Positions 2,352 to 26,966 of a stretch of 44,392 nt of DNA are shown piece by piece (position 1 is the stretch's first letter; each line of letters starts with the position of its first letter). The stretch spans positions 1-44,392 of the forward strand of contig NIVC01003072.1 of assembly GCA_002269645.1 (NCBI GenBank), written 5' to 3'. The stretch comes from Macrostomum lignano. Its lineage: Eukaryota. Below the pieces are notes generated by a model that saw nothing but the letters and a program-made list of their open reading frames with translations, searched no databases and had not been told where the DNA came from. Both the position numbers and the translations under genes were made by a program.

Positions 2352-3461
2352 CTACGCCTTGTGCCCATTGATCTCTGTGCCGTTTCGCCTGTAGAACTCG
2401 GACTGAACGATGCCGACGCGGCAATGCGCCCGATCCGGGGGGTCCAGCTGATTCGATAGCCGCTTGCCGTACACAGACGAGTAGAGAGTCGGTACCGGCT
2501 TTGAAATTTCCTGGAAATATCGTTATATCCAGGAACCGTGTTAAAACGGATCATCAACGTACCAAGCCGTTAAAATGTAATTATTTGCAGTGTAAATGTT
2601 TTGAACTTATAAAGTTCACTACTAGCCGTTACAAAACATTTAAATTACCTCCTGATGCACTTGGAGGCCTTGAGACTTTGCATGCTCCCTGTCGTCTCTG
2701 TGCAGCTTGGCATTGAAATCGCGCTCCTGGTGAAAAATCCTATCGTAGCCATAGGCCGAGTAGCGTTCCTGTGGGATGGGCGGTAAAGGCAATAGCTAGG
2801 GTGAGAGAGGAAATGTATTGAAATTTTAATCTATTTTTACTGTATACTGCGCTGCATCTAAGGTAGTTGTAGTCTTCAATTTCGCCTTTCCTTTATTTAT
2901 ATATCATCTATTTTCAAAGTCTCGTGGGTTTTAAAATAAAAGTAAATCACTTAAAACTGACAAAAAATTTACCAACTCTATATTATTTCGTCTGTTCTAA
3001 CTTTAGAGGGTTTAAGCCAGTATTACTTTAGGACAGCTGGGCATATAAAATGCTTATATATGGTCTGGAAGCTACTTTCATACTAGTGGCAAACAGGGGC
3101 GTAGGGAGGGGGGGGGATAAGGGGGGATGTATCCCCCCCCGAAGAGCCTGACCAAAACTTTTTTGTTGCCCTTTGTTGCTATACATGATACCATGTGACT
3201 CTGTCATAGCACTTTTACCTTGGTGTATCCCCCCCGTAGAAAATTCACCTTGGTGTATCCCCCCGTAGGAAATTCCTGGCTACGCCCCTGGTGGCAAAAT
3301 CTTACATTTTTATCTACGTTGAAATATGTACGTTCCCTCGGTGCATGGCGCTCTGGAGGGACAAAAGAAAATGAGGAAAGCTCGCAAGGGCGACCTCGCA
3401 AGACGAATTCGTCAGTATCCGTCTTTACGGGAATAACAAAATCGCTTTGCTCTTCTTCCAT
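2352..3461 (-). CDS. CFAP90: CFAP90/C5orf49-like cilia- and flagella-associated protein, about 144 aa, 3 exons
   Basis: Exons (-): 3461..3306, 2768..2649 (alternative acceptor 2795), 2510..2352, all phase 0, GT-AG. Translation includes LRGRPCELSSFSFVPPERHAPRERTYF, YDRIFHQERDFNAKLHRDDREHAKSQGLQVHQE and SSVYGKR...QSEFYRRNG. These match the C5orf49 motifs I recall (KLHRDDREHAKSLGLHV, SSVYGKR, FYRKN). Confidence 0.9.
3094..3290. mobile_element. Non-autonomous hAT-type MITE (197 bp) in CFAP90 intron 1
   Basis: TIRs CAGGGGCGTAG (3094) and CTACGCCCCTG (ends 3290); 8-bp TSD GTGGCAAA at 3086-3093 and 3291-3298. Confidence 0.9.
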
Positions 3462-3861
3462 TAGGAGCTTTGCTTCTCTTGTCAGTAGGAAAATACAAAG
3501 ACGCTGGTATAGATCAAACCGATGATTTGATTTTGTATATAGCCGAAAACATATTCAAATTTTAAACTGAATAGGAGCGACACTATTAGCTACAACAAGT
3601 AAAACAAAATCTTCTGAACAAAATTACTTTGCCCTTAATTCTATAGTAATAGCGCAAGTATCAAATAAATAAAAAGTTTTTTGATATAACAGATTGAAAA
3701 AAGAACAAATTTATGTAAGTATTTTTTTGTTTGGGGGAACGATTTCAAGTTTAATAAGACCCAAGAATGATCTATAGCTCACGGACTGTAAGGTAGTCTA
3801 GCAATTTTGGATACTTTGCGTGTGTTTAAAAATAAGACTACTAGATACTTTTTAAGAGGAA

Positions 3862-6800
3862 ATGAGCAGAAATTTTCCAACTTTGCAAGAGAAAGTTGGT
3901 AACGCTTCTTCGAGGTAATCTAATCTTCAATGTTTTTCATTTTAAGATATTCGTGTACTCCATATAATAAAAATGGTTTGTCGGTAGGTATCTATCTAGG
4001 TATGCGATCAATTTTACCTCTCTACTAAACATCCAATTTTTAGACATATGTTTTGTTTATTTGTCGACTGTTGCTTTTAAAAGGCTCGTACATCATTTAA
4101 GAAGAATTTACATTACTAACATTGTCTAGTCATTAAGTGCAGAACATCAGAATTCATATGGCATGTGCTAAACAAAAAACCTTATTAATATTACTTTTGG
4201 TCAACTGGTTTAAAATATAATTGTATATTAGTTGTCACTAGGTAATATATATATATCGATTTTTTATTTTATCAGTAATAGCTTTAATAATTGCAATAAT
4301 GCTTTTATAGCATTTTGTTTAATATCTTTGCTTTAGGTTGTTATGCTATTTATCAATAACTGCCATACCTTCTTAGGAATAAAAATTACTGAAAATCAAT
4401 TCTAACTTTTCCTCTTAAATTATGCACTTAAAGCTAATTTTCTAATTATGATTTAGCATAGAAAACTAAATTAAAAGTTAGACATTTTGCTTTGCATGGC
4501 TATCAAAATTAAAATGAAAGAAGTCTTTGAAAAAAAGCTATTTTTGCATTCAAAACCCAAATCAAGATCTGTGCAAGACCGCGTCAGCTCAGTGAGCCAA
4601 CGAGAGGCCCAAAATGTTCTTCGACTTCGCGTCAATCGAGTCTGCCTTGTACAGCAGCTCAATGTAGATCCCGTGGTTGATTACCTGAGACGTGAAGGTA
4701 TTCTCAGCGACACCGATGTTCGCTTCGTGTCCCGCGGTGCCAACAGGTCTGAGAAGACGCGAATGCTGCTTGACATGCTGCCCAGCAAGGATCCCAGCAC
4801 CCAGTGGTACAACAAGTTCAGGTGGGAATGTGAGCTGCAAGTATTGCCGAATGAACGCCCTTCTGTTCTTCGAATCTCTATTCTGAGAATCGCCCTCAAA
4901 TCTCTATTCTGAGAATCGCCCTCAAATCTCTATTCTGAGAATCGCCCTCGAATCTCTATTCTGAGAATCGCCCTCGAATCTCTATTCTGAGAATCGCCCT
5001 CGAATCTCTATTCTGAGAATCGCCCTCAAATCTCTGTTCTGAGAATCGCCCTCAAATCTCTGTTCTGAGAATCGCCCTCGAATCTCTATTCTGAAAACCA
5101 GCCCCCTAGATCTAATCTGGACCAGAGAATGGCCCTCTAGATCTAATCTACACCAGAGAATGGCCCTCTAGATCTAATCTACACCAGAGAATGGCCCTCT
5201 ACATTTAATCTGCACCAGAGAATCGCCCTCTACATTTAATCTGCACCAGAGAATCGCCCTCTAGATCTAATCTGCACCAGAGAATCGCCCTCTAGATCTA
5301 ATCTGCACCAGAGAATCGCCCTCTAGATCTAATCCACACCAGAGGAACCTCTAGAGCAAGCGATCTAGAAGCAAAGTCCCGTCACCTACCCAGGACGTCT
5401 CTATCGGCAACATCCACCGTCGACGCCACCACCGCTCGGAATCATCAAATCCTGGTTGACTTTCTAGACAGCACAAATCTAGCCAATCTGAAATCGAGTT
5501 CCACAGACTCAATGCAACACTCTGAGCAGCAGCAGCAGCAGCCGCCGCTGCCGCCGATTCAACCTCAAGAAGACGATCCGACGTCTGCAGAGCATCGTCA
5601 GCGTTGGAAGGCGCTACGCTCGGCGGCCAAGTCCAGACTGAGTCAGCTCGAAGCCAATCCGTCTATTCGATTGAGTCGCCTACCGGAGGACTTGCCCGAG
5701 CACCTGGCTCGAACTTACGAAGCCTGGACAGCTAACGGCGGCAGCGGTCGCTCCGCGGCCAAGCACGAGCGTCGATGCCTGTCGCGACTGCGAACCGCCG
5801 ACGAGTTCGCCTTGCAAGCCGCCGGTTCGGCCAATCCCGAACGACTCATGCTGGTCTGCTTCATTTCGCCGCTGCACCGTCTGCTGTGCGACATTCGCAA
5901 GCGTCATCTGGCTTATAAATACTTACTAGCCGATGCGCCTAGCCTTGGCAACGCCATAGCAACCGCGTTTGCTAACTTATCTACCGGGCCGGACGGTCGA
6001 CGACTTTTCACCGACGGTCGATGGTCGCGGTACGCGGCTACTAAGCTGGCAAATTTGGCCGGCCGACTGTTCGACTTTCTGGCCGGAGTCAATCTGTTTA
6101 GAGAGTGCGAGACAGTTGCCGGGTCTTTGTGCGACTATCTGAATAGGTGAGGCTGCTTAAGTATCTGAGCTGTCTGAAGTAAAACTTGTTTCACACGTTG
6201 TTAGTGTAACGCTCGGCGATCTAGTGATAAAATAATTCCATCACAACATCCGATGACTATGACCGACGGTGACATTCATTTGGGGCTTTTGTGCTAAAAT
6301 TAACAAAATTTTGGGTAAACGGCAGGAGTAACTATGACTTGATTTTTAAGGCTAAATGTCTCAGTACCTAATTAGTGCTATGTCTATTTTTGGGTTGGCA
6401 TTTTTGTGACTTACCTTGGCTAAGCCCCTCGCCAGGGTGTTGCACATGTATGGCCATGTTGCCATTTTATTACATCCATGTGACACACAAAGCCACCATA
6501 GTCTCTGTGACACAAGCGACTGTATATAACTCTCACTAATCTCCTTGAAAAGGTTCGGCGGCGACTGCGTGGAAGCCCTGCTGCCAACCTACCGCGCCAG
6601 CGTCAGGCTGATGGAAGCCCGGCTCAACAACGCCGACTACCAGCTGGCCGACGCTGCCAGTCAGGCGGCACAGGCCACGGCGGCCAGAATCAACCGCTTG
6701 TCGTTTGGCCAAAAAGTGATGGACAACCAGGCCCTGCTGCAGGCACAGATTGGTCGGATGCTGCTGGACCAGGGTAGCCTGGCGTCCGCGTTGGGTGCTT

Positions 6801-9800
6801 TTGGTAGCGCCATCTCGGTGAGTGCATGCTAATTTGTTTTTAGATTTTTTAGAATATGCAAGCATAAGAATATTAATTGATTAATTATTTGCCAGTGCGG
6901 GCCTGCAGAGTTTTCTTTTATTAAACAGGATTCATTATTATTTGTTTTACTTATAGTTTTAAATGATAAAATAAATGATCAATAACTCTATTAAATATTT
7001 AGGTATAGATAATTTTTTATTACGTTTTATTAATATTAAAAAAATAATTAAACGAAAAATAGTAAGTAAAAATTTAAATCAAAATGACTTTTTATTGAAT
7101 TAAAATTGTTAATTATACATAAATTGAGTCGTCTCTTGAGTAAATATAGAAAAGATTTCTTTTATACTTGAAAAATTTAATAAAATATCAATTTTAGACT
7201 GTGGATCTTAATGATACAGAGGCCGTCTTCAAAATTCTCTACCACGCTTTGCAACTTTACCTAACAAATTCCGATGAAGGAAAAGCGGAAAAATTAGCTG
7301 TTGCTTGCGTACAGCATGCTTAGTAAGTACTTTTTTGTAATTTCCATACCCGCTTGACTTAATATTAACATAAATTTTAATTTATTATTATTTCAGCAAA
7401 TTTTACAAAACAGAATCGCCGGAATACATCAAGTCGTTGTTAAACTTTGTCAAATTTTCAAACGCTTTCTGTCAAGATGATTTTGGAGTCGAAGTTGCTG
7501 TGGTAAGTTTGGTCACGGGTGTGCAAAGTTTTATTTTCTAGTGTTTGGAAATATTTCTCTAACATCCCTAGAAAACTATTTGGTCTCATATGTATGAAAA
7601 ACGAATTTTATTTTTACTGTATCGAAATTTATACGATGTCATTCTAAGAAGGAAACAAACCAAAGTCAGAAAATTTAGTTTTTTTAAGTAATAGTTATTT
7701 TAGTGTAATTTTTTTAGCTTTTAAGTAAGTAATTCGGTGCAATCTTAAGTATCTCATGGTTTAAAAACCATGTCAGTATCTTAAGATAGTCTGATGTAAA
7801 TTTTAAATAAGAATCGATTTGACATTGTACCGCCCTTCGTTCGAGAAACTTTCATTAACCGTATTAATCTAACATTCTAGAAACCATGCACAAATCCAAA
7901 TGTCGCGATCTTTGCAGAAGTTTATCTTCACCTAATAATATTCTACGAGCTAGTTTCAAGCATTTATTAATGAATACTAAATTATGTACTATAGTAAATA
8001 GTATAGTAAACGTCCTGGATATAGCATAGTAAATATCTGTGTAATTATCTGTAAATTAATCAGCACGTTAAATTTGTTATACTGTAGAAAATATTTTTAG
8101 AACTTTCTCGAAAACCAAGTCATATCTATAAATATACGGCAGGCGCATCGTCATATCTTTATCTTCCCCATTTTCTTTATTCGTTCCTAATACACCAATA
8201 AACAAAGGAACCACTGATTTCATTTGCTGACGAATGCTAACATCAATCCAACTAATTCCGCCAATGTCGTTCTGTTCTAACAAAATATAATTTTTAGATT
8301 ACACCTAATTCTTAGAAAATATCGCATCAGCTAAAAAACTTCGTTCTTTTCGTAAAAATTGGATCTCATTCTATAGGAAACTTATTCTCTCTTTCTAGGA
8401 AAAATCAATTCCGTTTCTAAGGCTAATTCTCACCTCATTCTTATAAAATTTAATAAATTTCCTATCCATCAAATTCCAGAACGCATCTTTATTCGCTCAG
8501 CTCATCCTGGGCTACCAGCACCCGCTACTAGCCGAAGTCCAGTCGCACCTGTCGTTGGCGCAGCTTCTACGGCTCCGTCATCGCAGCCGCCGCGGTCAGG
8601 GTGCAACTGCGGAGCCCCAAGAAGTTGTCGCTCACGTGGAAGCTTCTCTAGCCGCAGTCAGAATGAGCTCTGGCGAGTCGGCATCTCAGCATCCCAACGC
8701 TGCCTCCTTGATGACTAATCTAGCCCAAGCTGCTCGCCTAGCGAACCCCGCCATCCTGCCAGTTGAACTGCTTCAAGTCGCCATCGAATTCGGTAGAAAA
8801 TCTGTTGAAATTCTCTCGAATACCATCGGTCGGCACAGTCCGGCAGCTGTGCAAGCCAGAATCTGTCTGGGCAGACTTCTGGCCGATGTGCCTTCGGGGA
8901 GTACCGTCCGGAGGCTGAGCGGCTGGCTGATGAAGCTCTAGAAGCGCTGATTGACAGCCAACCAGCTCAAGGGCACCTGCTGCTCAGAGCTAAACTCCAG
9001 TTGGCTAAGTAGGCCATTTTTTAGTCTGTCAGATTTTTTATTCTGAGATTTTGAGTCTGAAATTTTTGAGTCTGAGGTTTTGAGTCTGTGAGATTTTGAG
9101 TCTGTGAGATTTTGAGTCTGGGTGATTTTGAGTCTGAGATGTTAAGTCTGGGATTTGGATACTGAGATTTTGAGTCTGTGAGATTTTGAATCTGGGAGAT
9201 TTTGAATCTGGGAGATTTTGAATCTGGGAGAGTTTGAGTCTGGGATTTTGAGTATGAGATTTTGAGTCTGTGAGATTTTGAGTGTGAAATTTTGAGTCTG
9301 TGAGATTTTGAGTCTGTCAAATTCTGAGTTTGAGATTTTGAATCTGGGTGATTTTTAGTCTCTGAGATTTGAGCCTTTGAGATTTTGAATCTGAGAGATT
9401 TTGAATCTATGAGATTTTGAATCTGGGAGAGTTTGAGTCTGGGATTTTGAGTCTGTGAGATTTTGAGTCTGGGTGATTTTTAGTCTCTGAGATTTGAGCC
9501 TTTGAGATTTTGAATCTGGGAGATTTTGAATCTGGGAGAGTTTGAGTCTGGGATTTTGAGTATGAGATTTTGAGTCTGTCAAATTCTGAGTCTGGGATTT
9601 TAAGTCTGTGAGATTTGAGTCTGGTTGATTTCGAATCTATGATATTTTGAGTCTGATATTTTGAGTCTGCTAGTCACTGCATGAGTCTGTCAATTTTAAT
9701 TGTTTAACTCGGCTATTAGATCAACATTTGGTAAACTTGGGTCATCTAATTGAGATTCAATAATTTAAATACTTTTTTCATCTCTAAAGGCTGCACCGAG

Positions 9801-12800
9801 CCGCCGGCAATCCCAAACGAGCCCTTGCCCTGGCCAATGACGTCATCGAACAGACTGAATGCTACGGCTCTTATATTCGATGGCTAGACCAGGCCTACAT
9901 TCTCGCTATTGAGTTGCTAAGCGAGTCCAAAGACTTGGCTGAAGCTGCTGCTGCAACGACGACAAGCGATGAGATGATGGCTAAACGGCAAGATTGGCTG
10001 AGCAGGCATCCGATGTCGCGGTCTGCTCAGGGCCTGGATTGGGCCGCTTTGCACGATCGACCCGACAAAGAGTTCTTTCGGCGATTCCGGGCCTGGGGCG
10101 ACGACAGGAAGGAACTGGTGAGGCAGGTCGCTGCCGCCGCAGCCGCTGCCGCTGCCACCACGGCAGATGGTCAGGGAGCTGAAGGCAGCAAAACTGAGTG
10201 AGTTTGAGCGCGCTCTAAACAGCTCTACCCTGGTCTGATTCTGTTAGAATGTGTTTTCACTCTGTGAATCAAGGTGTCTAGTTCGGTTAAGAACGTGTCT
10301 AGTTCGGTTAAGAACGTGTCTATCGGTTAAGATCGTGTCTAGTTCGGTTAAGAACGTGTCTAGTTCGGTTAAGAACGTGTCTATCAGTTAAGATCGTGTC
10401 TAGTTCGGTTAAGATCGTGTCTAGTTCGGTTAAGAACGTGTCTGGTTCGGTTAAGAACGTGTCTGGTTCGGTTAAGAACGTGTCTAGTTCGGTTAAGAAC
10501 GTGTCTAGTTCGGTTAAGAACGTGTCTAGTTCGGTTAAGAACGTGTCTAGTTCGGTTAAGAACGTGTCTAGTTCGTTTAAGAACGTGTCTGGTTAAGAAC
10601 GTGTCTGGTTAAAAACTCACTTTACCAAACATTCTTTTCAGACAAAATAAAGTCAAAGCAGCTCAAAACCCAGAGTCCAGAACTGCTGTTGACGGATCCG
10701 AGACGGCAGCTGAAGCAAAACAGCAACGCGTGATAAAATGTGCGATTTCTTTCAGTTTAAATTAAAAATATTTGTCCTTAAAAGGCTTTTTATATTAAGA
10801 AATCATCTTGTTTATCTTTAATTCCACAGTGCTGCTCATAGGCGATTCCGGAGTCGGGAAATCCTGCCTGTTGCGCAGATTTGCTGAAAACTCATTTGAC
10901 GAAAGTCAAAACGCGACGCCAACAATTGGTGTGAACTTCAAAATTGTTCAAAATGAAATCGATGGGTCAAGCATCAAGTGCCAGATCTGGGACACCGCTG
11001 GACAAGAGAGGTGATTCCTTGCATTTTTACTTGTGCGCACTTGCCTCTGATCAACCCCGAATCTCTACCCCCTAATGTACACTTATCTCTTACCTACCCC
11101 ATTCAATCTCTACCCCTCCAAATGTACACTTGTCTCTTATTAACCCATTCAATCTCTACCCCTTCCAAATGTACACTTGTCTCTTATCAACTCATTCAAT
11201 CTCTACCCCTTCCAAATGTACACTTGTCTCTTATCAACCCATTCAATCTCTACCCCTTCCAAATGTACACTTGTCTCTTATCAACTCATTCAATCTCTAC
11301 CCCTTCCAAATGTACACTTGTCTGACCAACCCCATTCAATCTCTACCCCTCCAAATGTACATTTGTCTCTTATCAACCCATTCAATCTCTACCCCTTAAT
11401 GTACACTTTCCTCTGACTTCAACAAAACTCCAGATTCCGCACAATAACATCATCCTACTACCGAGGCTGCGCCGGCGCTCTGCTGGTCTTCGACGCCTCG
11501 AACCGCGACAGCTTCGACAGCTGCGAGCGCTGGCTGCAGGAGCTGCGGGCCTCCGCGCCAGAGTCCGTGCACGCGGTTCTGGTGGCCAACAAGAGCGACT
11601 CGGATGAGGCCGCCGTGACTCAGGAGGAGGCTGACGAGTTCGCCAAGTCGCACGGCATCGAGCTGTGCTGGGGCGTCAGCGCCCGCACCGGACAGAATGT
11701 CGGCCAGGCATTCAGGGGCCTGCAGAGTCGGGTGCTGCAGAGCAAAGTTGATGGGTTAGTTATTGAGCTACCGAAGGTTTCAGAATAGAAAGCATTGCAA
11801 CACTATAGTCTCGCATAGCAACACGCTAGTCTCGCATGGCAACACGATACTCTCGCATGGTAACCAAGAACTTAGGGTTTCGCCTTCCCACAGACTGAGT
11901 TCAAATCAGGCTCCAATGAATTCAACTGACATGCGACAATTGCCTCAGTTGGTGCCTAAGAAAAGTGAAAATTCTAACGAACATATTGATTATCAGATAA
12001 AAGGTAAGCAGGATTGAACTTTTTTATTGTAGAAGGTAAAAATAAAGAATTATTGTATTACGCTCATTCAATTTATCATTCAGTTCTTCTAATTGGCGAC
12101 TCCGGTGTTGGAAAGTCCAGCTTGCTTCAGCGATTTGCAGACAAAGAATTTGATGCCACTAACGAAATGCCACAAACCATTGGAGTGGAATTTCGAGCTG
12201 TGAAAGACAATATTGATGGCTGTCGAGTCAAGAGTGTGTTCTGGGACACAGCTGGTGCGGAGAGGTAAGTTTGAGATGGAATTACGCTAACCTGAGAAGG
12301 CTTATATGCTAGACAGAGGCCTCACACCTGTTAGACTGGGGCTTCACACTTGTTAGACAGAGGCCTCACACCTGTTAGACTGGGGCTTTACACTTGTTAG
12401 ACAGAGGCCTCACACCTGTTAGACTGGGGCTTCACACCTGTTAGACAGAGGCCTCACACCTGTTAGACTGGGGCTTCACACCTGTTAGACAGAGGCCTCA
12501 CACCTGTTAGACTGGGGCTTCACACTTGTTAGACAGAGGCCTCACACCTGTTAGACTGGGGCTTCACACTTGTTAGACAGAGGCCTCACACCTGTTAGAC
12601 TGGGGCTTCACACCTGTTAGACAGAGGCCTCACACCTGTTAGACTGGGGCTTCACACCTGTTAGAGAGAGGCCTCACACATGTTAGACTGGGGCTTAACA
12701 CCTGTTAGACAGAGGCCTAACACTTGTTAGACAGAGGCCTAACACTTGTTAGACAGAGGCCTCACACCTGTTAGACTGGGGCTTCGCACATGTTAGACAG

Positions 12801-15800
12801 AGGCCTCACACCTGTTAGACTGGGGCCTCAAACCTGTTAGACAGAGGCCTCCCACGTGTTAGACAGAGGCCTCACACCTGTTAAACAGTGGCCTCACACC
12901 TGTTAGAGGCCTCACACCTGTTAGACAGAGGCCTCACACCTGTTAGACTGGGGCTTCACACTTGTTAGACAGAGGCCTCACACCTGTTAGACAGAGTCCT
13001 CACACCTGTTAGACAGAGGCCTCACACCTGTTAGACGGAGGCCTCACACCTGTTAGACAGAGGCCTCACACCTGTTAGACAGAGGTCTCACACCTGTTAG
13101 ACAGAGGTCTCACACCTGTTAGACAGAGGCCTCACACCTGTTAGACAGAGCCTCACACCTGTTAGACTGAGGCCTCACACCTGTTAGACTGGGGCTTCAC
13201 ACCTGTTAGACTGGGGCTTCACACCTGTTAGACAGAGACACCTGTTAGACTAGGGCCAAACCCATCCATAAATTACCCGACATCCGCAGGTTCCGCTCCA
13301 TCACGAGCGCCTACTACAGAGGCTGCGCCGGCGCTCTGCTGGTCTTCGACGCCTCGAACCGCGACAGCTTCGACAGCTGCGAGCGCTGGCTGCAGGAGCT
13401 GCGGGCCTCCGCGCCAGAGTCCGTGCACGTGGTTCTGGTGGCCAACAAGAGCGACTCGGATGAGGCCGCCGTGACTCAGGAGGAGGCTGACGAGTTCGCC
13501 AAGTCGCACGGCGTCGAGCTGTGCTGGGGCGTCAGCGCCCGCACCGGACAGAATGTCGGCCAGGCTTTCAGGGGCCTGCAGAGTCGGGTGCTGCAGAGCC
13601 AGAGCCAGCAATTCGGGTTGGTGTCTGGCCTTTGCAACAGCATTTAATCCCTTTAGCTATACATTCTCATCGTCATAGCAACACAACGTCATTCACATAG
13701 CAACAAAACTTCGTCCCCATGGCAGCACAACCTCAAACACAGCAACACAACTTCATCCCCATAGCAACACAAATTCATCCCCATAGCAACACAACTTTAT
13801 CCGCATAACAACGCAAATATTTTCTCTTTAAAACCGATTCCTAGTTTGGCACAGACCCAGCAGTCAAACGAATCGACTACTTTCGCTCCGAAGGCCATCA
13901 ATACGAGTAAATCTACTGAGCAGTCGAAGGAGTCTCCCATTTCGAAGCCAGCAGCAGTGGGACAGGCAAACCTGAACGATGATCGCTCTCCTGACTATGT
14001 GATAAAAAGTGAGATATAGCATCCTTGTCTTTACCATCTGACTGTTACGTGGGTGCGAAGTGAGATGGATATGCGGAGTGAGCTGGGTGCGGAGTGCGGC
14101 GGGTGTGGAGTGAGGTGGGTGTGGAGTGCGGCGGGTGTGGAGTGAGGTGGGTGTGGAGTGAGGTGTGTGTGGAGTGAGGTGGGTGCGGTGTGAGGTGGGT
14201 GTGGAGTGAGGTGGGTGCGGAGTGCGGCGGGTGTGGAGTGAGGTGGGTGTGGAGTGAGGTGGTGTGGAGTGAGCTGGGTGCGGAGTGCGGCGGGTGTGGA
14301 GTGAGGTGGGTGTGGAGTGAGGTGGGTGTGGAGTGCGGCGGGTGTGGAGTGAGGTGGGTGTGGAGTGAGCTGGGTGTGGAGTGAGCTGGGTGCGGAGTGC
14401 GGCGGGTGTGGAGTGAGGTGGGCGCGGGGTGAGGTGGGTGCGGAGTGAGGTGGGTGCGGAGTGAGGTGGGTGCGGAGTGAGGTGGGCGTGAAGTGGGGTG
14501 TGTGTGGAGTGAGGTGGGTGTGGAGTGAGGTGGGTGTGTAGTGAGGTGGGTTCGGAATGAGGTGAGTGCGGAGTGAGGTGGGTGCGGAGTGGAGTGAGGT
14601 TCGGAGGTGGGTGCAGAGTGAGGTGGGTGCAGAGTGAGGTGGGTGCAGAGTGAGGTGGGTGCAGAGTGAGGTGGGTGTGACAATGCTCACAATGCCCACA
14701 CCCACACGCAGCGGTGCTAATCGGAGACTCCGGCGTCGGCAAGTCCTGCCTGGTCCGCCAATTTATTGACCAGGAATTTGACGAGAGCCTCAAGGCAACG
14801 CCCACCATCGGAGTGGACTTTCGCGTGGTGAACAGCGACATTGACGGGTCGCGAGTGAAAACTCAGATTTGGGATACGGCAGGACAACAGAGGTGAGGTT
14901 GAAGTTGGATAGCTCGCTCTTTCCTTTATTAACTTTATTTCTGGACGAAATTGTGTTATAAAACCCATTAGATTTACACATAAGTTACTATCATTAACTC
15001 ATTAGACAGCAGGGACCTTAACACCTGGATCATAATAACTGAATCATGAATCTAGGCTCATAAACCTATATTAAAACACCGGAATCATGACACTCAAATT
15101 ATAAATCTTGGATCATAATTATCTGAATCATAACACCTCGATCATTACACCTGGATTATAACACCTGGATTATAACACCTGGATTATAACACCTGGATTA
15201 TAACACCTGGATCGTACCACCTGGATCATAATACCCGGATCATAACACCCGGATTAGAACACCTGGATCATAACACCTGGATCATAACACCTGGATCATA
15301 ATACCTGGATCATAACACCTGGATCATAAAACCTAAACCATAACACCCCTTAGACCGCCCTTCGCCCCTCCCCGACATCCGCAGGTTCCGCTCCATCACG
15401 AGCGCCTACTACCGAGGCTGCGCCGGCGCCCTGCTGATCTTCGACGCCTCGAACCGCGACAGCTTCGACAGCTGCGAGCGCTGGCTGCAGGAGCTGCGGG
15501 CCTCCGCGCCAGAGTCCACGCCCGTGGCTCTGGTGGCCAACAAGAGCGACTCGGATGAGGCCGCCGTGACTCAGGAGGAGGCTGACGTGTTCGCCAAGTC
15601 GCACGGCGTCGAGCTGTGCTGGGGCGTCAGCGCCCGCACCGGACAGAATGTCGGCCAGGCTTTCAGGGGCCTGCAGAGTCGCTGCCTCGCCCAGATGAAG
15701 CTTCAGAAGGCGGAGACAGCGCCGAAGGCGGCCAACGCGTCAATACGGATAGCAGAGATTGACAGCATGCTGGCGAGTGTCAAAGATATGAGTTCGTCGA

Positions 15801-17795
15801 ATTTCGATTCGAAAGTTTTGTCCAGATTCACCGTTGACAGTCAGCGGCAAAGCGCGCCGCCAGGTGCCAGCGTGGAGGAGCTGCCGTTGATTGAGTCCCA
15901 GACTGCGTCTGTGCCCGACAGGCCTGCTGTGCTCGTCAATGGTGATCTTGGGCGATTTTTAGGGCTTTTAAATAAGACACAAATGGCGCCAAACTAGACA
16001 CAAATGGCGCCAAACTAGACACTAAAGGCGTCAACCTAGACACAAATGGCGCCAAACTGAACACAAATGGCGCCAAACTAAACGATAAGAATCGATGGCG
16101 CCAAACAACTTTACGAGTATGTTTACCAATGATTAAACCGATCAACTCCCGCAGTAATCGTTGTTGGGAACGCTGGCGTTGGCAAGTCAAGCCTTCTGGC
16201 TCGCTTTGTAGGCGGCCAATTCAACGAATCGTATGCGCCGACAGTGGCCGCGAGTCTGCAGAGCCGACTGGTCAAGGTTGACGGGGTGCCGGTCCAATGC
16301 CAGATTTGGGACACTGCCGGTCAGGAGAGGTGAGGAGATTTTGACGTTCGCACGGTGGTGCGCGAAGGGATGTGTGGAGTGAGGTGGGCGCGGGGAGTGA
16401 GGTGGGTGCGGGGAGTGAGGTGGGCGCGGGGAGTGAGGTGGGTGCGGGGAGTGAGGCGGGTGCGGGGAGTGAGGCGGGTGCAGGAAAGTGGGGTGGGTGC
16501 AGGGAGTGAGGTGGGTGCAGGGAGTGAGGTGGGCGCAGGGAGTGAGGTGGGTGCAGGAAGTGAGGCAGCTGCAGGGAGTGAGGTGGGCGCAGGGAGTAAG
16601 GTAGGTGCAGGGAGTGGGGTGAGTGCAGATTGAGGTGGGTGCAGAGTGAGGTGGGCGCGGGGAGTGAGGTGGGTGCGGGGAGTGAGGTGGGCGCGGGGAG
16701 TGAGGTGGGTGCGGGGAGTGAGGTGGGCGCGGGGAGTGAGGTGGGTGCGGGGAGTGAGGCGGGTGCGGAAAGTGGGGTGGGTGCAGGGAGTGAGGTGGGT
16801 GCAGGGAGTGAGGTGGGCGCAGGGAGTGAGGTGGGTGCAGGAAGTGAGGTAGGTGCAGGGAGTGAGGTGGGCGCAGGGAGTAAGGTAGGTGCAGGGAGTG
16901 GGGTGGGTGCAGATTGAGGTGGGTGCAGAGTGAGGTGGGCGCGGGGAGTGAGGTGGGTGCGGGGAGTGAGGCGGGTGCGGAAAGTGGGGTGGGTGCAGGG
17001 AGTGAGGTGGGCGCAGGGAGTGAGGTGGGTGCAGGAAGTGAGGTAGGTGCAGGGAGTGAGGTGGGCGCAGGGAGTAAGGTAGGTGCAGGGAGTGGGGTGG
17101 GTGCAGATTGAGGTGGGTGCAGAGTGAGGTGGGTGCAGGGAGTGAGGTAGGTGCTAACAAAGTCCACCGCCATTACTCCCAGCCATCGCAGCAACTCGGA
17201 GGGCTACTACAGCGGCTGCCAGTGTGCTATGCTGGTCTATGACGTCACTGACGCGGACAGCCTCCGCGACTGCGAGGCCTGGCTGCAGCGACTGCGCCCG
17301 GCACAGGACGGCGACAGCGTCGGACTACCAGCCGACGCCCCCATCGCTCTGATCGGCAACAAGCTCGACCGCCGCGAGCTCCCTACGCCCTCCGGAGCTC
17401 AGTCCGGCCTGGCGCTGGCTCGGCGCCACGGCCTGGTTTGGCGCGAGGCAACGGCGCTAGACTCGGAGAGCGCCAGCGAAGCGTTCCTGTGCCTGCTGCG
17501 CGCTGTTCTACAGACCATGCATTCGCCAGAACAACTTCGGGATGCGGATTCTAAGAAACGCAAAGGCGAAAAAAACGCTAGCAGACGAAAGCGAAAGTCG
17601 AAGCAGAAGGCAAGAAACAGCGGTCGCGATGCCGCCGCCAAAGTTTCCGCCGTGAGGTTTGGCGGCACGGCGACGCTGACGGAATTTCCAGGCGTCGGAG
17701 ACAACGCGGCGACCACCCAAGATGACGACAATGAGGCTGCCTGGACGTCGGACTCCTCGCTAAGCAGCAGCAGCTCGGCCGAGTCAGCTGAGTAA
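3862..17795 (+). CDS. Predicted multidomain protein, about 1,800 aa: CARD - APPBP2-like TPR region - four tandem Rab-like GTPase domains (19 exons)
   Basis: Exons: 3862-3914, 4567-4821, 5394-6146, 6553-6817, 7198-7322, 7397-7502, 8480-9008 (needs +1 G at 8896-8899), 9790-10197, 10642-10739, 10830-11010, 11434-11754, 11894-12003, 12084-12264, 13290-13616, 13845-14008, 14712-14892, 15385-15941, 16155-16329, 17183-17795. All introns are GT-AG with matching phases; total 5403 nt including the corrected base. Exon 1 and the 10197/10642 junction are the least certain parts. Confidence 0.7.
4567..5480 (+). CDS. CARD (death-fold) domain, exon 2 plus start of exon 3 of the multidomain gene
   Basis: [66 protein letters not shown]|TSL...[10 protein letters not shown] follows the CARD consensus (LxxxRxxLvxxL.v..vlDyL...gvLs......I......r..k.r.LLd.Lp.kg....F). 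Confidence 0.85.
4868..5340. repeat. Compound intronic minisatellite: 26-bp unit, then 31-bp unit sharing the core GAGAATCGCCCTC
   Basis: Tandem CTGAGAATCGCCCTC(A/G)AATCTCTATT to about 5095, then CCAGAGAATCGCCCTCTAGATCTAATCTGCA. Confidence 0.95.
5590..10197 (+). CDS. APPBP2/PAT1-like TPR region (exons 3-8 of the multidomain gene)
   Basis: Collinear similarity to human APPBP2 as I recall it: RLSRLPEDL~IRSLPENI; [11 protein letters not shown]~KVLRALDKRHL; [16 protein letters not shown]~VRLLHVRNGNCKYHLG; [31 protein letters not shown]~KAEQLIKHAVYLARDHFGSKHPKYSDTLLDY; [17 protein letters not shown]~SVFGGKNIHVATAHEDL. Confidence 0.7.
6290..6452. mobile_element. Degraded relative of the CATACATGCGCAAC MITE family
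   Basis: Contains TTTGGGTAAACGGCAGGAGTAACTATGAC, identical to 28643-28671, and ends in GTTGCACATGTATG (6439-6452), a TIR variant. Left end and TSD not recognisable. Confidence 0.7.
9035..9690. repeat. Intronic minisatellite, about 10/19-20 bp units (GAGATTTTGAGTCTG(T/G))
   Basis: Tandem periodicity within intron 9009..9789. Confidence 0.95.
10263..10610. repeat. 21-bp minisatellite (GTGTCTAGTTCGGTTAAGAAC)
   Basis: Tandem periodicity. It fills the predicted intron 10198..10641 and explains ORF 10396..10596. Confidence 0.95.
10830..11754 (+). CDS. Rab-like GTPase domain 1 (exons 10830-11010 and 11434-11754)
   Basis: [22 protein letters not shown]|[19 protein letters not shown]. Resembles Rab1/Rab35-type sequences. 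Confidence 0.92.
11065..11410. repeat. 47-bp intronic minisatellite (CCAAATGTACACTTGTCTCTTATCAACCCATTCAATCTCTACCCCTT)
   Basis: Tandem periodicity in the intron splitting Rab domain 1. Confidence 0.95.
12084..13616 (+). CDS. Rab-like GTPase domain 2 (exons 12084-12264 and 13290-13616)
   Basis: [22 protein letters not shown]|[19 protein letters not shown]. Linked in frame to domain 1 by exon 11894-12003, which ends HIDYQIK|V. Confidence 0.92.
12312..13255. repeat. 22-bp minisatellite with two alternating variants (CACACCTGTTAGACAGAGGCCT / CACACCTGTTAGACTGGGGCTT), a 44-bp higher-order repeat
   Basis: Tandem periodicity in the intron splitting Rab domain 2. Confidence 0.95.
13670..13815. repeat. 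Short degenerate CATAGCAACACAA repeat; a similar short array lies at about 11805-11865
   Basis: Repeated CAT(A/G)GCAAC core in the introns after domains 1 and 2. Confidence 0.7.
14085..14680. repeat. G-rich minisatellite (GGAGTGAGGTGGGTG(T/C))
   Basis: Tandem periodicity. Source of the PHS/PT-rich spurious ORFs. Confidence 0.95.
14712..15690 (+). CDS. Rab-like GTPase domain 3 (exons 14712-14892 and start of 15385-15941)
   Basis: [22 protein letters not shown]|[19 protein letters not shown]. Linked to domain 2 by exon 13845-14008, which ends PDYVIK|T. Confidence 0.92.
15085..15345. repeat. 14-bp minisatellite (GGAT(T/C)ATAACACCT)
   Basis: Tandem periodicity in the intron splitting Rab domain 3. 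Confidence 0.9.
15975..16105. repeat. 21-bp minisatellite (AAACTAGACACAAATGGCGCC)
   Basis: About 5 imperfect tandem units in intron 15942..16154. Confidence 0.85.
16155..17795 (+). CDS. Rab-like GTPase domain 4 (divergent) plus basic/Ser-rich tail (exons 16155-16329 and 17183-17795)
   Basis: [23 protein letters not shown]|[20 protein letters not shown]. Followed by [21 protein letters not shown]; ends [10 protein letters not shown] with no C-terminal Cys. Confidence 0.88.
16372..17152. repeat. G-rich 18-bp minisatellite (GGGAGTGAGGTGGG(T/C)GC(A/G)) with higher-order blocks
   Basis: Tandem periodicity in the intron splitting Rab domain 4. Confidence 0.95.
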
Positions 17796-21667: not shown

Positions 21668-24600
21668 TCAATCATCCTCATCTCCGGCCTCGTTGTCTTC
21701 GGCGTCTCCACCGCCGCCTTCATCCTCGGCGTCGGCATCGGCAAAGTGCAGCACAACAGCCTCATCAACCTCTTCATCGGCGGCTTCCTTAGTGCCCCCC
21801 TGATCCCCATCGTCGCCAAGGAAATCCCACACTAAGATAGTATCGTCGTGGGACGATGAAACGATCTGAAATTCGTCGAATTGCAAGCGGAACACCCTGC
21901 CAGAGTGTTCGCTGAGTGTGACGATGCACAGCGCGTCGGCCGACGATCTGGGGTCAAGGGCGGCCTGCAGGTCCCACACTTTGATCTTGCCGTCGTAGGC
22001 GCCAGACACAATTCGTTTGGAGTCGAAACGGATGCAGCGGACCAGCTCTTCGTGCCCTGCAGGGGGATTAAGATAATAACTATCGTATCGGGAGGTGCCT
22101 TTGATGTTAACAGAAGAAGGTTCAATGAAAGTGGGGAGGTGCCTTTGATGTTTACCGAAAAAGGTTCAATGAAAGTGGGAAGGTGCCTTTGATGTTTACC
22201 GAAAAAGGTTCAATGAAAGTGGGAAGGTGCCTTTGATGTTTACCGAAAAAGGTTCAATGAAAGTCTGAAGGTGCCTTTGATGTTTACCGAAAAATGTTCA
22301 ATGAAAGTCGGGAGGTGCCTTTGATGTTTACCGAAAAAGGTTCAATGAAAGTCGGGAGGCGCCTTTGATGTTTACCGAAAAAGGTTAAATGAAAGTCGGG
22401 AGGTGCCTTTGATGTTTACCGAAAAAGGTTCAATGAAAGTCGGGAAAGTCTAGAGGTGCCTTTGAATTTTGCCGAAAAAGGTTTAATGAGAGTCGGGGTG
22501 CCTGGTGAAAGGTTCAATAAAAATCGGTCCGTTGATGCTTACCGATAAGGGTTCAATGAAAGGTTGGGGCGGCGCCTTTGAAGTTTGAAGTGAATCTACA
22601 GTTTCAAACTTACCATTGAGCACTCGCAGACAGATTCCGCTCTCGATATCCCACAGTCTGATAGAATTATCAGACGAGCCGCTAACAACCAGATTATCGC
22701 GATACTGCAAACAGGCGATGCCGCGCTTGTGACCGCTCAGGGTGCGCACAAATTCGCAGCTGGCAGTGTGCCAAACTTTAATAGTCCTATCGCCGGAAGC
22801 TGACACAATGTAGCGCGAATCGAAATCTACAACATTCACGGCGGCTCGGTGGCCTACTAGAACTCGTCTAAGCGCGATGTCGCTAGGCGAGTGCATGTCC
22901 CACACGGCTATGGATCTGTCCTTGGAGCACGTGACCATCAGGCCGTCGCAGAAGCGCAGATGGAGCACGGCCTCGCAATGATGATACAGTGTGTTCAACG
23001 GTTGGCCAGTGCGCACGTCCCAGACCCGCACTGTGCTGTCTGAGGAGCCGCTAATTATTATGTCATCGTCGTATTGGAGGCACAGTACGGAGCCCATATG
23101 GCTGGATAGCACCTGGTTTGTGTGATAATTGTATGATGGGGATATCGGTAAGGGAGATGCATTCACTAATCCCATAGTTTGATACTGATCCCAATTGATA
23201 ATCCCCTCGAGTGAGTAATAATCCCAATTGATAATCCTCTTTTGTGGTTAATAATCCCAATTGATAATCCTCTCTTGTGGTTTATAATCCCAATTGATAA
23301 TCCTCTCTTGTGGTTTATAATCCCAATTGATAATCCTCTCTTGTGGTTTATAATCCCAATTGATAATCCTCTCTTGTGGTTTATAATCCCAATCGATAAT
23401 CCCCTTCAGTGATTAATAATCCCAATTGATAATCCTCTCTTGTGGTTTATAATCCCAATTGATAATCCTCTCTTGTGGTTTATAATCCCAATTGATAATC
23501 CTCTCTTGTGGTTTATAATCCCAATTGATAATCCTCTCTTGTGGTTAATAATCCCAATTGATAATCCTCTCTTGTGGTTTATAATCCCAATTGATAATCC
23601 TCTCTTGTGGTTTATAATCCCAATTGATAATCCTCTCTTGTGGTTAATAATCCCAATTGATAATCCTCTCTTGTGGTTTATAATCCCAATTGATAATCCT
23701 CTCTTGTGGTTAATAATCCCAATTGATAATCCTCTCTTGTGGTTTATAATCCCAATTGATAATCCTCTCTTGTGGTTTATAATCCCAATTGATAATCCTC
23801 TCTTGTGGTTTATAATCCCAATCGATAATCCCCTCCAGTGATTAATAATCCCAATTGATAATCCTCTCTTGTGGTTTATAATCCCAATTGATAAACCTCT
23901 CTTGTGGTTTATAATCCCAATCGATAATCCCCTCCAGTGATTAATAATCCCAATCGATAATCCTCTCTTGTGGTTTATAATCCCAATTGATAATCCTCTC
24001 TTGTGGTTTATAATCCCAATCGATAATCCCCTCCAGTGATTAATTATCCCAATTGATAATCCCCTCTTGTGTTTTTATAATCCCAATTGATAAAATAACC
24101 TAAATCGATAATCACCTACGATTTTTTTGATTTGAATCCTCTACACAAAGATTAATTCTATATTATTATCCCCATTCCGAATCCCTTACCTTAGTACACT
24201 CCAGAGATTTACGATCCCACACTTTGATGGTGTTATCCCTTAGGCCGCTAATAATCTTGTCCTCGTCGTACTGCAGGCAATAAACTCCTTTGGAAGATTC
24301 GCTTCGGCATTGAATTCGACGCAATTTAAAACTGCCCTTGGCCCAGTTGCTCTCGATTCGCCTGATGTCGCTGAGAATCTTCGGGTACAGCTGCCTGTAG
24401 TGGCTGTCTGAACTGCCGACGTCGCTCTCCGCTCCGTCTCGCTGCGGCCGGCGCAGGTCTCGCAGCCAGCCTCTGCGGACGGCCAGCCCGCGCCACAGAT
24501 TGCTTCTGCGCACCTGCAAGCAAATTTTAAAGTACAGTGCGGTTTGTCTGGTTTGCCCAGCAACTGGGGATCTGGGAGGCTGGCCCAGCAACTGACACTC

Positions 24601-25578
24601 TGGGAGGCTGGCCCAGCAACTGACACTCTGGGAGGCTGGCCCAGCAAGCAGCAACTGAGGATCTGGGAGGCTGGCCCAGCAACTGACACTCTGGGAGGCT
24701 GGCCCAGAAACTGATCTGGGAGGCTGTTGGCCTAGCAACTGAGGATCTGGGAGGCTGGCCCAGCAACTGGGGATCTGGGAGGCTGGCCTAGCAACTGAGG
24801 ATCTGGGAGGCTGGCCCAGCAACTGGGGATCTGGGAGGCTGGCCCAGCAACTGACACTCTGTGAGGCTGGCTCAGCAACTGGGGATCTGGGAGGCTGGCC
24901 CAGCAACTGAGGATCTGGGAGGCTGGCCCAGCAACTGGGGATCTGGGAGGCTGGCCCAGCAACTGACACTCTGTGAGGCTGGCCCAGCAACTGGGGATCT
25001 GGGAGGCTGGCCCAGCAACTGAGGATCTGGGAGGCTGGCTGGCCCAGCAACTGAGGATCTGGGAGGCTGGCCCAGCAACTGAGGATCTGGGAGGCTGGCT
25101 GGCCCAGCAACTGAGGATCTGGGAGGCTGGGCCAGCAACTAGGGATCTGGGAGGCTGGCCCAGCAACTGAGGATCTGGGAGGCTGGGCCAGAAACTAAAC
25201 AGTTGCTAACCAAATATTTGAGTCCCCAAAGTCAATCCTCTCAACGCTCACCTGCGACTCAATCAGCTTACGCCACAGCAGGCCCTCAGATACAACCCGT
25301 CGCCACTCGCTGCACACCATCTCAGCAGAGGCCAGAGATTTTGCATCCAAACAGGCCAAGATTCGCTCAGCCAAATGATCCAAGCCACATGTTGGCAGTA
25401 CACTGATAAAGTCTCGCTGCAGCATGGGAGCTAAGTATTCCTGCACTTGGCCATGCTGATAATGCGACATACTGCCCAGTAACTGTTCAACAAAGTTCAC
25501 CTGTTCCATTTCTGACCAAGTGGAGAATTGCTCCAAGCAGACTGACTGCTCAGACAGAAATTGTTCAGACAGAGACAT
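21668..25578 (-). CDS. BTRC: beta-TrCP (F-box/WD40 protein; BTRC/FBXW11/slimb orthologue), about 512 aa, 4 coding exons
   Basis: Exons (-): 25578..25252, 24513..24190, 23112..22614, 22056..21668, GT-AG, in phase. D-domain ([14 protein letters not shown]...HYQHG), F-box ([17 protein letters not shown]), seven WD40 repeats ([43 protein letters not shown]). An additional upstream exon is possible (AG acceptor just 5' of EKAKYIM). Confidence 0.97.
22090..22560. repeat. 44-bp intronic minisatellite (GAGGTGCCTTTGATGTTTACCGAAAAAGGTTCAATGAAAGTCGG)
   Basis: Tandem periodicity in the last beta-TrCP intron. Confidence 0.95.
23183..24100. repeat. 33-bp intronic minisatellite (TATAATCCCAATTGATAATCCTCTCTTGTGGTT)
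   Basis: Tandem periodicity. Explains ORF 23440..23841 ([11 protein letters not shown])n. Confidence 0.95.
24553..25192. repeat. 28-32 bp intronic minisatellite (CTGGGAGGCTGGCCCAGCAACTGAGGAT)
   Basis: Tandem periodicity in intron 24514..25251. Confidence 0.95.
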
Positions 25579-26669
25579 GATGTACTTGGCTTTTTCTGGT
25601 ACAGCATAAATTCCAAGGTGCAGTATAGAGGCACATAGTTTAGTGTTCCAAAGGATGATACAAGTATAAAGAAATGAAAATTTTATCATCTATATTATTC
25701 AATTGTTTTATGTTAGCTATTATTGTAATTATATTATTAATTACAGATTGGAAAATGATTATTAATTCATAAAATTGAAAAACATCTAAACATTAGACTC
25801 TTAATGTTAGTCATATTTTAATTACTATTAAAAAAACCAGTTGTGAGTTTTTACTAGATATATATCATATTCTGGCTTAATTAAAATCTTTATCAATAAA
25901 TAAATAATTATAAAAATAACTTATGTACTATATTACACTACTATATAGTTAGTATATTTTCAGTTGAATGAGCATATAATAATATAGTTTGAATGTCTTT
26001 ATATTTATAGTTAGTTTGAAAAGAGTTTGGGAAATACTTTAAATTTGTAAGACCTGGGGCTATATAAATAATATTTAAATATTGGCGCAATTTTTAGTTT
26101 AGAGACATTGGCATTTTAGAATAAGAGCATCTTACATCTAATTCCTAGTAACCTAATATCTATTCTAGGTGGCAGTGTTAGGCAAAGTAAAAAATAAACT
26201 AGATAAAAATTTGGGATTGACCAACTATGATTTTTTCTTTTGTGCATGATTAGAACTAGACAATGCATGAAACAATGCATGACCATGAATTTTTTAACAT
26301 ACATTTTAAATTAGACATAGAACTATTTGTTTTAATACTACTAAGTCTAGCAATTTGTATTGATTTTTAAGCTTTGTTTTATTAAGTTTATTGTTTTACC
26401 ATATTTTATTATGTGGCTTTGTTATATCTATGCTGATTTGTAACAATTTTGGTTTGCTTTTCACAATCATATATTTTAGAATATTGTGCTACGACTTAAA
26501 AAGTAAGGTTTAAATCAGGAAATTCACAAATTATGATTGGCAATAGACAATATGTGATTTTTTTCCTCGTAATCATAGTTTTCATGATTGTGACTAAGCC
26601 TACAATCACAGTCAATCTCCAATAAAATGCTAAAATTAATAATTAAAAAAAATTTATATTAATAATAAT

Positions 26670-26966
26670 CATACATGCGCAACAGTTGGCCGAGTCGGCC
26701 GATCCGGCCAACTGATTTGGCGGCCAACCAAGGAAGTCGCAAAAATGCCCACCCGAAAAAATGACCAAGTAGTAGTACTAAGTAGCTGATGAGGCATTTT
26801 AGCTTAATAAGACAGTCATAGTTACTCCTGCCGTTTACCCAAAGTTGCGTTAACTTTGCTTTAGGGTTTTTTACATGTAAGTCGCATTTTTGGCCAAAAA
26901 CTACGTCGCATTTTTGTTAAAACTAAGTCGCATGGCCGACCGAATTTCGGAGGTTGCGCATGTATG
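26670..26966. mobile_element. hAT-type MITE (297 bp), CATACATGCGCAAC family
   Basis: 14-bp TIRs CATACATGCGCAAC / GTTGCGCATGTATG; 8-bp TSD ATAATAAT (26662-26669 and 26967-26974). Confidence 0.92.

Follow-up and report, generated by a model that had tools for sequence, protein, structure and literature searches.

What does a stretch of DNA encode when the stop codon of one apparent gene lies beneath a consensus splice donor, and when the next open exon leads, without a start codon of its own, into an entirely different set of domains? This question is raised by positions 3862-17795 on the plus strand of contig NIVC01003072.1 of Macrostomum lignano (GenBank assembly GCA_002269645.1, Mlig_3_7), of which positions 1 to 44,392 of the forward strand, 44,392 nucleotides in length, make up the window analysed here. 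An earlier reading of the letters alone (the original prediction) proposed a single gene of about 1,800 amino acids (aa) that joins a CARD, an APPBP2-like TPR region and four tandem Rab-like GTPases. We conclude that this is very probably correct: one 19-exon gene, from the ATG at 3862 to the stop TAA at 17793-17795, encodes the CARD, the TPR region and four Rab-like domains in 1800 aa, continuous in the window only after the correction of one nucleotide. Three GenBank proteins, PAA53531.1, PAA53536.1 and PAA82250.1, cross the junction 10197|10642 on which the proposal turned.

The model was built from open-frame blocks and splice-site pairing and was refined against database proteins; those of M. 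lignano match the conceptual protein at 93-97% identity in a protein search. An earlier exon model (start ATG 4496, CARD junction 4829|5468, exon 7 from 8501) was dropped, as the database proteins give 3862-3914, 4567-4821|5394 and 8480.

The fusion junction at intron 8 is read from the sequence. GAG TGA occupies 10196-10201, overlapped by the phase-2 donor GA|GTGAGT with its cut after 10197. The acceptor TTCTTTTCAG closes the intron at 10641, ahead of an exon (10642-10739) with an AATAAA at 10646-10651, and the next acceptor, ...TTCCACAG, ends at 10829, the spliced product reading RVIK| into Rab domain 1. The original prediction had placed these coordinates exactly, at every position, and had rightly described the 444-bp gap as mostly minisatellite, which fills 343 of its 444 nt (10274-10616) in 21-nt and 16-nt units. 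Any phase-2 GTGAGT or GTAAGT donor is bound to be followed at once by a stop, since its frame reads xxG TGA, and the donor at 6146 shows the same; the 'apparent stop' at 10199 thus does not speak against splicing. A possible first exon within intron 8, with an ATG near 10248, was rejected, since it leads to a phase-1 donor that is incompatible with the phase-2 acceptor at 10642.

Transcript-derived annotation reads across this junction in the window and in two further copies of the gene, one inverted on the same contig (copy B) and one on contig NIVC01000483.1 (L001), which is 99.3% identical to the window. The coding sequence (CDS) that GenBank gives at the window locus, PAA53531.1 (BOX15_Mlig031168g1, 1043 aa, 9974-17795), starts inside exon 8, equals model residues 758-1800 exactly, and crosses 10197|10642 and every later junction through the four Rab units to the final stop. 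The paralogous CDSs, PAA53536.1 from copy B and PAA82250.1 from L001, hold CARD, TPR and Rab1 in one CDS over the junction GSKTE|QN(K/E); PAA82250.1 has the C-terminus KLMD, followed by a TGA at L001 17294-17296, and therefore requires the splice from exon 11 to exon 12 (11754|11894). The genome annotation was made without ab initio models, from StringTie/TACO assemblies and mapped Trinity contigs of RNA-seq data, with open reading frames (ORFs) called by TransDecoder, and its transcripts were cut at peaks of spliced-leader and poly(A) (T-fill) reads (PMC5730564). Because the annotation is transcript-derived (PMC5730564), PAA53531.1 reflects cis-spliced RNA, and no annotation cut falls inside the CARD-TPR-Rab locus. 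Two UniProt predictions from another annotation, A0A1I8FWW3 (1667 aa) and A0A1I8FYK8 (1675 aa), likewise carry CARD, TPR and Rab, and share the model's Rab2-Rab4 junctions.

The Rab part is also poorly equipped to be translated by itself. No in-frame Met occurs in residues 772-1039 (linker 1 and all of Rab1), an absence which the original prediction had noted from 10642 well into Rab1 and which thus extends further, nor does any occur in residues 1098-1456 (the larger part of Rab2, then linker 3 and the whole of Rab3); linker 1 with Rab1, and linker 3 with Rab3, are therefore not separate genes. The M. lignano spliced leader ends ...GCATG (PMC8629364) and, joined at 10642, it runs into a TGA in frame; Rab1 could therefore not be translated from a trans-spliced Rab mRNA. 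A single open exon holds Rab3 and the linker as far as strand beta-1 of Rab4.

Comparison of the copies points the same way. Copy B has all 19 exons in an unbroken 1800-aa frame with every GT/AG kept; the window copy carries a frameshift at 8896-8899 which the original prediction missed. The G run of exon 7 aside, window and copy B differ by no indel in 5403 exon nt versus 14 in 3453 nt of non-repeat intron, with far more inside repeats. The ratio of nonsynonymous to synonymous substitution rates (dN/dS) between copies is 0.37 overall and 0.23-0.47 in Rab domains 1-3, the linkers being looser (on small counts); Rab domain 4 has one differing site, which is synonymous. The exons, and the intron at which the fusion occurs, are as follows.

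Exon 1, 3862-3914, plus strand: ATG start; donor AG|GTAATC in phase 2; N-terminus in agreement with database proteins P0001, P0002 and P0005.
Exon 2, 4567-4821, plus strand: CARD helices 1-5; Pfam CARD E = 1.4e-9 and 3.4e-9; junction YNKFR|TSLSA as in P0001-P0003.
Exon 3, 5394-6146, plus strand: end of the CARD, disordered Q/P-rich spacer and start of the APPBP2-like helices; AlphaFold2 residues 131-204 have a predicted local distance difference test score (pLDDT) <50, then helices.
Exon 4, 6553-6817, plus strand: TPR region, collinear with spiralian relatives.
Exon 5, 7198-7322, plus strand: TPR region.
Exon 6, 7397-7502, plus strand: TPR region.
Exon 7, 8480-9008, plus strand: TPR region; -1 frameshift in the window copy (G4 at 8896-8899).
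Exon 8, 9790-10197, plus strand: last TPR helices and ancestral C-terminus; ends GA|GTGAGT, with read-through TGA at 10199-10201; stand-alone relatives end here.
Intron 8, 10198-10641, plus strand: fusion junction, 444 nt, phase 2, 77% minisatellite; spliced out in P0002, P0003 and P0004.
Exon 9, 10642-10739, plus strand: 98 nt, open; linker 1 (QNKVKAAQ...QQRVIK); no Met; donor GTGCGA.
Exon 10, 10830-11010, plus strand: N half of Rab-like domain 1 (G1-G3); Pfam Ras 1.2e-20.
Exon 11, 11434-11754, plus strand: C half of Rab-like domain 1 (G4-G5); donor GG|GTTAGT, phase 2.
Exon 12, 11894-12003, plus strand: linker 2 (...DYQIK), with the first in-frame Met after residue 771.
Exon 13, 12084-12264, plus strand: N half of Rab-like domain 2; G3 = DTAGAE.
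Exon 14, 13290-13616, plus strand: C half of Rab-like domain 2; donor GG|GTTGGT, phase 2.
Exon 15, 13845-14008, plus strand: linker 3 (LAQTQQSNE...PDYVIK); no Met.
Exon 16, 14712-14892, plus strand: N half of Rab-like domain 3.
Exon 17, 15385-15941, plus strand: C half of Rab-like domain 3 and linker 4 (~86 aa), one open exon up to strand beta-1 of domain 4.
Exon 18, 16155-16329, plus strand: N half of Rab-like domain 4 (GNAGVGKS ... WDTAGQE).
Exon 19, 17183-17795, plus strand: C half of Rab-like domain 4 (NKLD), polybasic stretch, acidic/Ser-rich tail and stop TAA; no C-terminal Cys.

Minisatellites with units of 14-47 nt (one also of 88 nt) fill most introns, and their copy number varies between gene copies; examples lie at 4873-5344, 9018-9669, 10274-10616, 11038-11408, 12310-13237, 14075-14679 and 16376-17154.

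Several points weigh against a single gene with a full-length product. The complete 1800 aa are found in no single database entry, assembly indels or a transposon insertion having left each one truncated or short of exons. Exon (1.8%) and intron (1.5%) have similar substitution rates when the copies are compared, so that the signs of constraint are chiefly the lack of exon indels and the dN/dS values. For transcript support the analysis relies on the account of the annotation method in the assembly paper, and the exon 7 frameshift, if real, limits the window copy to a product of only ~670 aa, counted from its first ATG. Conceivable too are an unspliced isoform that ends at the TGA at 10199-10201 and a three-Rab protein begun internally at Met1040; and the functional model considered at the end of this paper is inference only.

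The alternative that survives best, though we judge it unlikely, grants that the fused transcript is real and holds that its main products are shorter: CARD-TPR with intron 8 retained, CARD-TPR-Rab1 as in PAA53536.1, or Rab2-4 from Met1040. Retention of intron 8, 11 or 14 gives an immediate stop, Met1040 and Met1045 are available in linker 2, and the annotated isoform of copy B does end after Rab1. It does so in a transposon-derived alternative last exon: copy B (locus L002) has a ~300-bp insertion (L002 17706-18004) exactly at the exon 12 acceptor, which matches at 90-94% the two inverted ends of a Tc1/mariner-like element (HTH + DDE_3) at window ~26.7-28.8 kb (ends at 26669-26966, plus strand, and 28520-28805, minus strand), and PAA53536.1 splices into this transposon end and stops there (FIHAQQ...KCPPKK). 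The window copy, however, lacks the insertion, PAA53531.1 continues to the last stop, and the frame is kept between copies in all four units and linkers.

It is improbable that the window copy is a decaying duplicate, a pseudogene whose frameshift is real, with the full protein made only from the paralogous copies. Exon 7 changes frame at TTCGGGGAG, where the window has four Gs (8896-8899) versus five in both L001 and copy B; the P0002 and P0003 proteins read on across this site without interruption, and the GenBank CDS starts only at 9974 because TransDecoder took the longer ORF downstream of it. Decay would also suit the large recent duplications in M. lignano, and hence redundant copies (PMC5730564), the presence of the whole block twice on the contig, and the transposon end at an acceptor of copy B, where the annotated isoform is truncated. 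Against this, the defect is a single-base difference in homopolymer length in a PacBio-based assembly, the 5.4 kb of exons hold no further one, and the window copy is transcribed and annotated. The same locus on L001 has G5 but other exon indels that are not in the window, -1 in exon 11 and -4 in exon 16; a different indel in each copy of a PacBio-based assembly indicates assembly error, and the G4 of exon 7 is probably such an error. A tiny intron (8888-8919, 32 nt, or 8794-8875) was rejected as the cause of the frame change: the 'intron' is good TPR sequence, and both other copies carry one more G.

The least probable alternative is an operon-like set of adjacent genes, in which CARD-TPR would end at the TGA at 10199-10201 with poly(A), the Rab gene or genes would be leader-spliced at 10642, 11894 or 13845, and the fused models would represent pre-mRNA or minor read-through; it draws on CARD-TPR relatives that stand alone and end at this exact point, on the AATAAA at 10646, on in-frame Met codons in linker 2, on stops at 11786 and 13645 that are hit by donor read-through after units 1 and 2, and on the ~100 nt of intron 8 free of minisatellite and its acceptor TTTTCAG, which fits [T/C]TNCAG, both typical of M. 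lignano operon spacers (~100 nt) and spliced-leader acceptors (PMC8629364). We regard it as very improbable, for the transcript-derived CDSs are cis-spliced in frame over 10197|10642 and later junctions, an annotation pipeline that cuts at leader and poly(A) peaks made no cut here (PMC5730564), neither Rab1 nor Rab3 has its own start codon and the leader at 10642 meets an in-frame TGA, one open exon is common to Rab3 and Rab4, and cis-splicing from a donor further upstream should win over trans-splicing (a rule cited in PMC8629364). The operon reading may instead describe how the fusion arose, by a donor appearing on the upstream stop codon.

If the single fused gene is accepted, its CARD-TPR half has identifiable relatives. 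Pfam, AlphaFold2 and Foldseek together recovered the CARD, the APPBP2-like TPR region and the four Ras-family stretches that the original prediction had named. The CARD (Pfam PF00619) scores 37-38 bits versus a cut-off of 23.9 and forms helices at residues 29-129 of the AlphaFold2 model (pLDDT 68-87); the family profile also matches the CARDs of RAIDD and Apaf-1, to which this CARD is closest. An exhaustive HMMER search with the region between CARD and Rabs returned only ~20 relatives, the best of them proteins of 792-860 aa from an annelid, a brachiopod, a nemertean and several molluscs; two bear the NCBI name 'amyloid protein-binding protein 2'. Among these spiralian CARD-APPBP2-like proteins, all uncharacterised, are A0A8S4N315 of Owenia fusiformis, XP_013395164.1 of Lingula anatina ('isoform X1'), V4AGT2 of Lottia gigantea, and those of Tubulanus, Babylonia and Physella. 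They share with the M. lignano protein an N-terminal CARD and a TPR region that is collinear up to residue 832, at 21-28% identity and with E values as low as 1.7e-33. The original prediction had proposed a search for CARD-TPR-Rab architectures in other spiralians; of the relatives scanned with Pfam, most have an N-terminal CARD and none a Rab domain. The relatives align end to end with M. lignano residues 1-832 and end where the fusion begins, whereas the M. lignano protein runs on into linker 1; the Rab array was therefore attached to a gene that already existed by itself.

One further fragment of the CARD + APPBP2-like type, P0012 (UniParc UPI0007A1364B, 386 aa), is divergent, with 40% identity over 200 residues. 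Judged by its UniParc number it probably comes from M. lignano, and it hints at a paralogue.

The description 'APPBP2-like' is well founded. The family profile matches human APPBP2 (8JAQ, 8JAL) over APPBP2 residues 40-574 with E = 3e-43, and the AlphaFold2 model, made with P0002 as its first sequence, gives the TPR part a pLDDT of ~80-90 and has APPBP2 as its best Foldseek match (E = 9e-15, template modelling score by target 0.69-0.72, ~630 aligned columns; next match 2e-6), other TPR proteins trailing it by eight orders of magnitude. The family profile is needed to see this relationship: searched against the PDB by phmmer, the M. lignano TPR region by itself yields nothing beyond a chance match to KDM5A. 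The two proteins share a homologous 11-TPR solenoid; the M. lignano protein differs in its ~17% identity, in the CARD in front and in the four G domains behind.

The functional extension of this likeness is not supported. Human APPBP2 (PAT1) is a Cullin-2 ligase substrate receptor for R-x-x-G C-end degrons (PDB 8JAL, 8JAQ; PMC10614623), and the original prediction had suggested that the M. lignano protein could likewise take part in ubiquitin-ligase recruitment. The degron pocket of APPBP2 is formed by Y338, Y341, V342, Y345, R380, L384, acidic 387/388, N434, R437, S441, Y468, L472, H476, S479, Y483 and Y515 (PMC10614623). Of these 17 contact residues M. lignano keeps R437 only, the spiralian relatives likewise differ from APPBP2 at nearly all pocket positions, and neither of the two zinc-dimer residues, C54 and H89, is conserved in M. 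lignano. As to the N-terminal VHL box of APPBP2 (alpha-1 to alpha-3, for Elongin B/C and Cullin-2), the sequence alignment begins only at residue 40; the structural alignment spans nearly the whole chain. With nearly all pocket residues and both zinc-dimer residues unconserved, and the VHL box unaligned in sequence, the function of APPBP2 is not transferable.

The second half of the protein comprises four Ras-family stretches in Pfam (593.7 bits). Domain 1 has as its nearest solved relatives Rab1A/B (E = 1.4e-47), then Rab35, Rab10 and Rab8, and domain 4 has Rab11 and Rab2 (E = 2e-30). The nucleotide-binding motifs are recognisable throughout: G1 is GDSGVGKS or GNAGVGKS, the switch-I Thr of G2 is present, G3 is DTAGQE in domains 1 and 4, DTAGAE in domain 2 and DTAGQQ in domain 3, G4 is NKSD or NKLD, and G5 is SAR in domains 1-3 and TAL in domain 4. 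In domain 2 the catalytic Gln is replaced by Ala; with this residue lost, GTP hydrolysis is probably lost as well, and the domain would remain GTP-bound. DTAGAE and DTAGQQ are both identical in copy B. RabF-type motifs (IGVDF, KxQIW, RFRSIT, YYRGA) are kept in domains 1-3 and only some of them (SHRSNS, YYSGC) in domain 4. The last 90 residues contain no Cys, and no CC, CXC or CAAX prenylation motif; since, moreover, internal domains cannot be prenylated, the domains are termed 'Rab-like' rather than canonical Rabs, and there is no prenyl anchor. The tail (residues ~1720-1800) has a polybasic cluster, which could serve as a nuclear-localisation signal or as a membrane patch replacing the prenyl anchor, and then an acidic Ser-rich end. 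Pfam matches to NACHT/nSTAND cover only 20-30 residues around the P-loops, none forming a stretch of its own.

The exon structure indicates how such an array could grow. Each Rab unit has three exons (linker, G1-G3 and G4-G5) with phase 2 at both ends, a symmetry that makes tandem duplication possible without a break in the frame. Units 1-3 are mosaics: their N-half exons (10830-11010, 12084-12264, 14712-14892) are 63-68% identical in DNA and have 47-56% G+C, whereas their C-half exons (11434-11754, 13290-13616, 15385-15705) are 91-95% identical with 65-68% G+C. The near identity of the C halves, not shared by the N halves, suggests that gene conversion has acted on only one exon of the unit.

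How does this architecture compare with those already known? The large Rab GTPases (CRACR2A/Rab46, Rab44, RASEF/Rab45) have EF-hands, a coiled coil and a single Rab domain, and mostly keep the prenylation site. Like them, the M. lignano protein places Rab-type G domains toward the C-terminal end of a long multidomain chain; unlike them, it has four such domains and no C-terminal cysteine. Two G domains each are present in Miro and EngA/Der. GIMAP8, with three AIG1 domains (PMC4201521), is the best-known multi-G-domain protein. All three resemble the M. lignano protein in carrying several G domains in tandem on one chain, but belong to other GTPase families. Of Rab type are the predicted multi-Rab proteins of bdelloid rotifers (Rotaria socialis, 991 aa, six Ras domains), whose alignments cover 98% of the Rab part with 31% identity. 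Predictions with five to seven Rab domains come from bdelloid rotifers and an unassigned ENA contig, a bivalve supplies one with three, and a CARD occurs in none of them. Unlike the M. lignano protein, neither the rotifer proteins, which are predictions only, nor GIMAP8, Miro and EngA have a CARD or an APPBP2-like TPR region.

A further comparison is offered by death-fold proteins. Apaf-1 and the NLRs are ordered CARD-NB-ARC/NACHT-repeats, and DAPK1/ROCO proteins join a Roc GTPase to a death domain. The M. lignano protein shares with these a death-fold, one or more P-loop NTPase domains and a helical or repeat sensor on one chain; it differs in its order, CARD-repeat-NTPase instead of CARD-NTPase-repeat, and in NTPases that are of Rab type and not STAND or Roc-COR. 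A literature search on the gene identifiers and on tandem-Rab proteins found no paper mentioning either. The earlier statement that no protein of this architecture had been described therefore stands for papers and fails for databases, where A0A1I8FWW3 and A0A1I8FYK8 were already predicted: the architecture is present in UniProt and GenBank as unnamed, truncated predictions and is undescribed in papers. Found so far only in Macrostomum, it appears from these comparisons to be a lineage-specific fusion of known parts, not a new class.

The gene lies within a duplicated neighbourhood. It is flanked on the left by CFAP90 (minus strand, 2352-3542) and on the right by beta-TrCP (minus strand, 21668-25584). 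CFAP90 and the CARD gene are divergent, with 320 bp between the 5' end of the former and the ATG of the latter at 3862, and given this spacing they probably share a promoter region. The block of three genes, CFAP90, CARD-TPR-Rab and beta-TrCP (window 1-27.8 kb), is repeated in inverted orientation at NIVC01003072.1:56.8-84.6 kb, where copy B lies, at 88-98% identity. Either the segment is genuinely duplicated in inverted orientation, or the assembly has joined related copies. Contig NIVC01000483.1 carries the block of three genes as well. Indels or insertions differ among the three assembly copies, and the GenBank CDS in the window begins mid-gene.

From these elements the construction of the gene can be read and a role proposed. 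The predicted protein begins with a CARD and a disordered spacer, continues with an APPBP2-type TPR superhelix (~600 residues) and four Rab-like G domains separated by linkers of 30-90 residues, and closes with a tail that is first polybasic and then acidic. The ancestral CARD-TPR gene ended at the end of exon 8; in M. lignano the donor GA|GTGAGT, lying over that stop, is cis-spliced in phase 2 to exon 9, and the Rab part could grow by in-frame tandem repeats of the phase-2 three-exon unit. As to function, the CARD might recruit a CARD partner, for example a caspase or an adaptor, the TPR solenoid might bind a peptide ligand other than the R-x-x-G degron of APPBP2, and the four G domains might serve as switches or binding platforms whose state depends on the nucleotide and through which assembly or location is controlled, each of these steps being proposed with low confidence. 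Taken together they would describe a cytosolic, GTP-regulated scaffold of death-fold or innate-immunity signalling, the role that we tentatively favour. A bolder version, which we consider distinctly unlikely, sees a new death-fold hub in which the Rab array replaces NACHT/NB-ARC and, as a multivalent platform gated by GTP, exposes the CARD or gathers it into clusters to trigger caspase or immune signalling, the fusion having arisen by a donor on the stop of an operon gene and the conversion of a trans-splice acceptor into a cis acceptor.

The locus is of interest at several levels. It is a lineage-specific gene fusion whose steps are legible in the sequence, a stop being bypassed by an overlying donor and a phase-symmetric Rab unit being repeated. 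It draws attention to a spiralian family, so far unstudied, in which a CARD precedes an APPBP2-type TPR solenoid, and so bears on the diversification of cell-death and immune adaptors outside vertebrates, flies and nematodes. As M. lignano is amenable to RNA interference and transgenesis, the function of a protein with a CARD and four Rab-like domains is directly testable in this animal.

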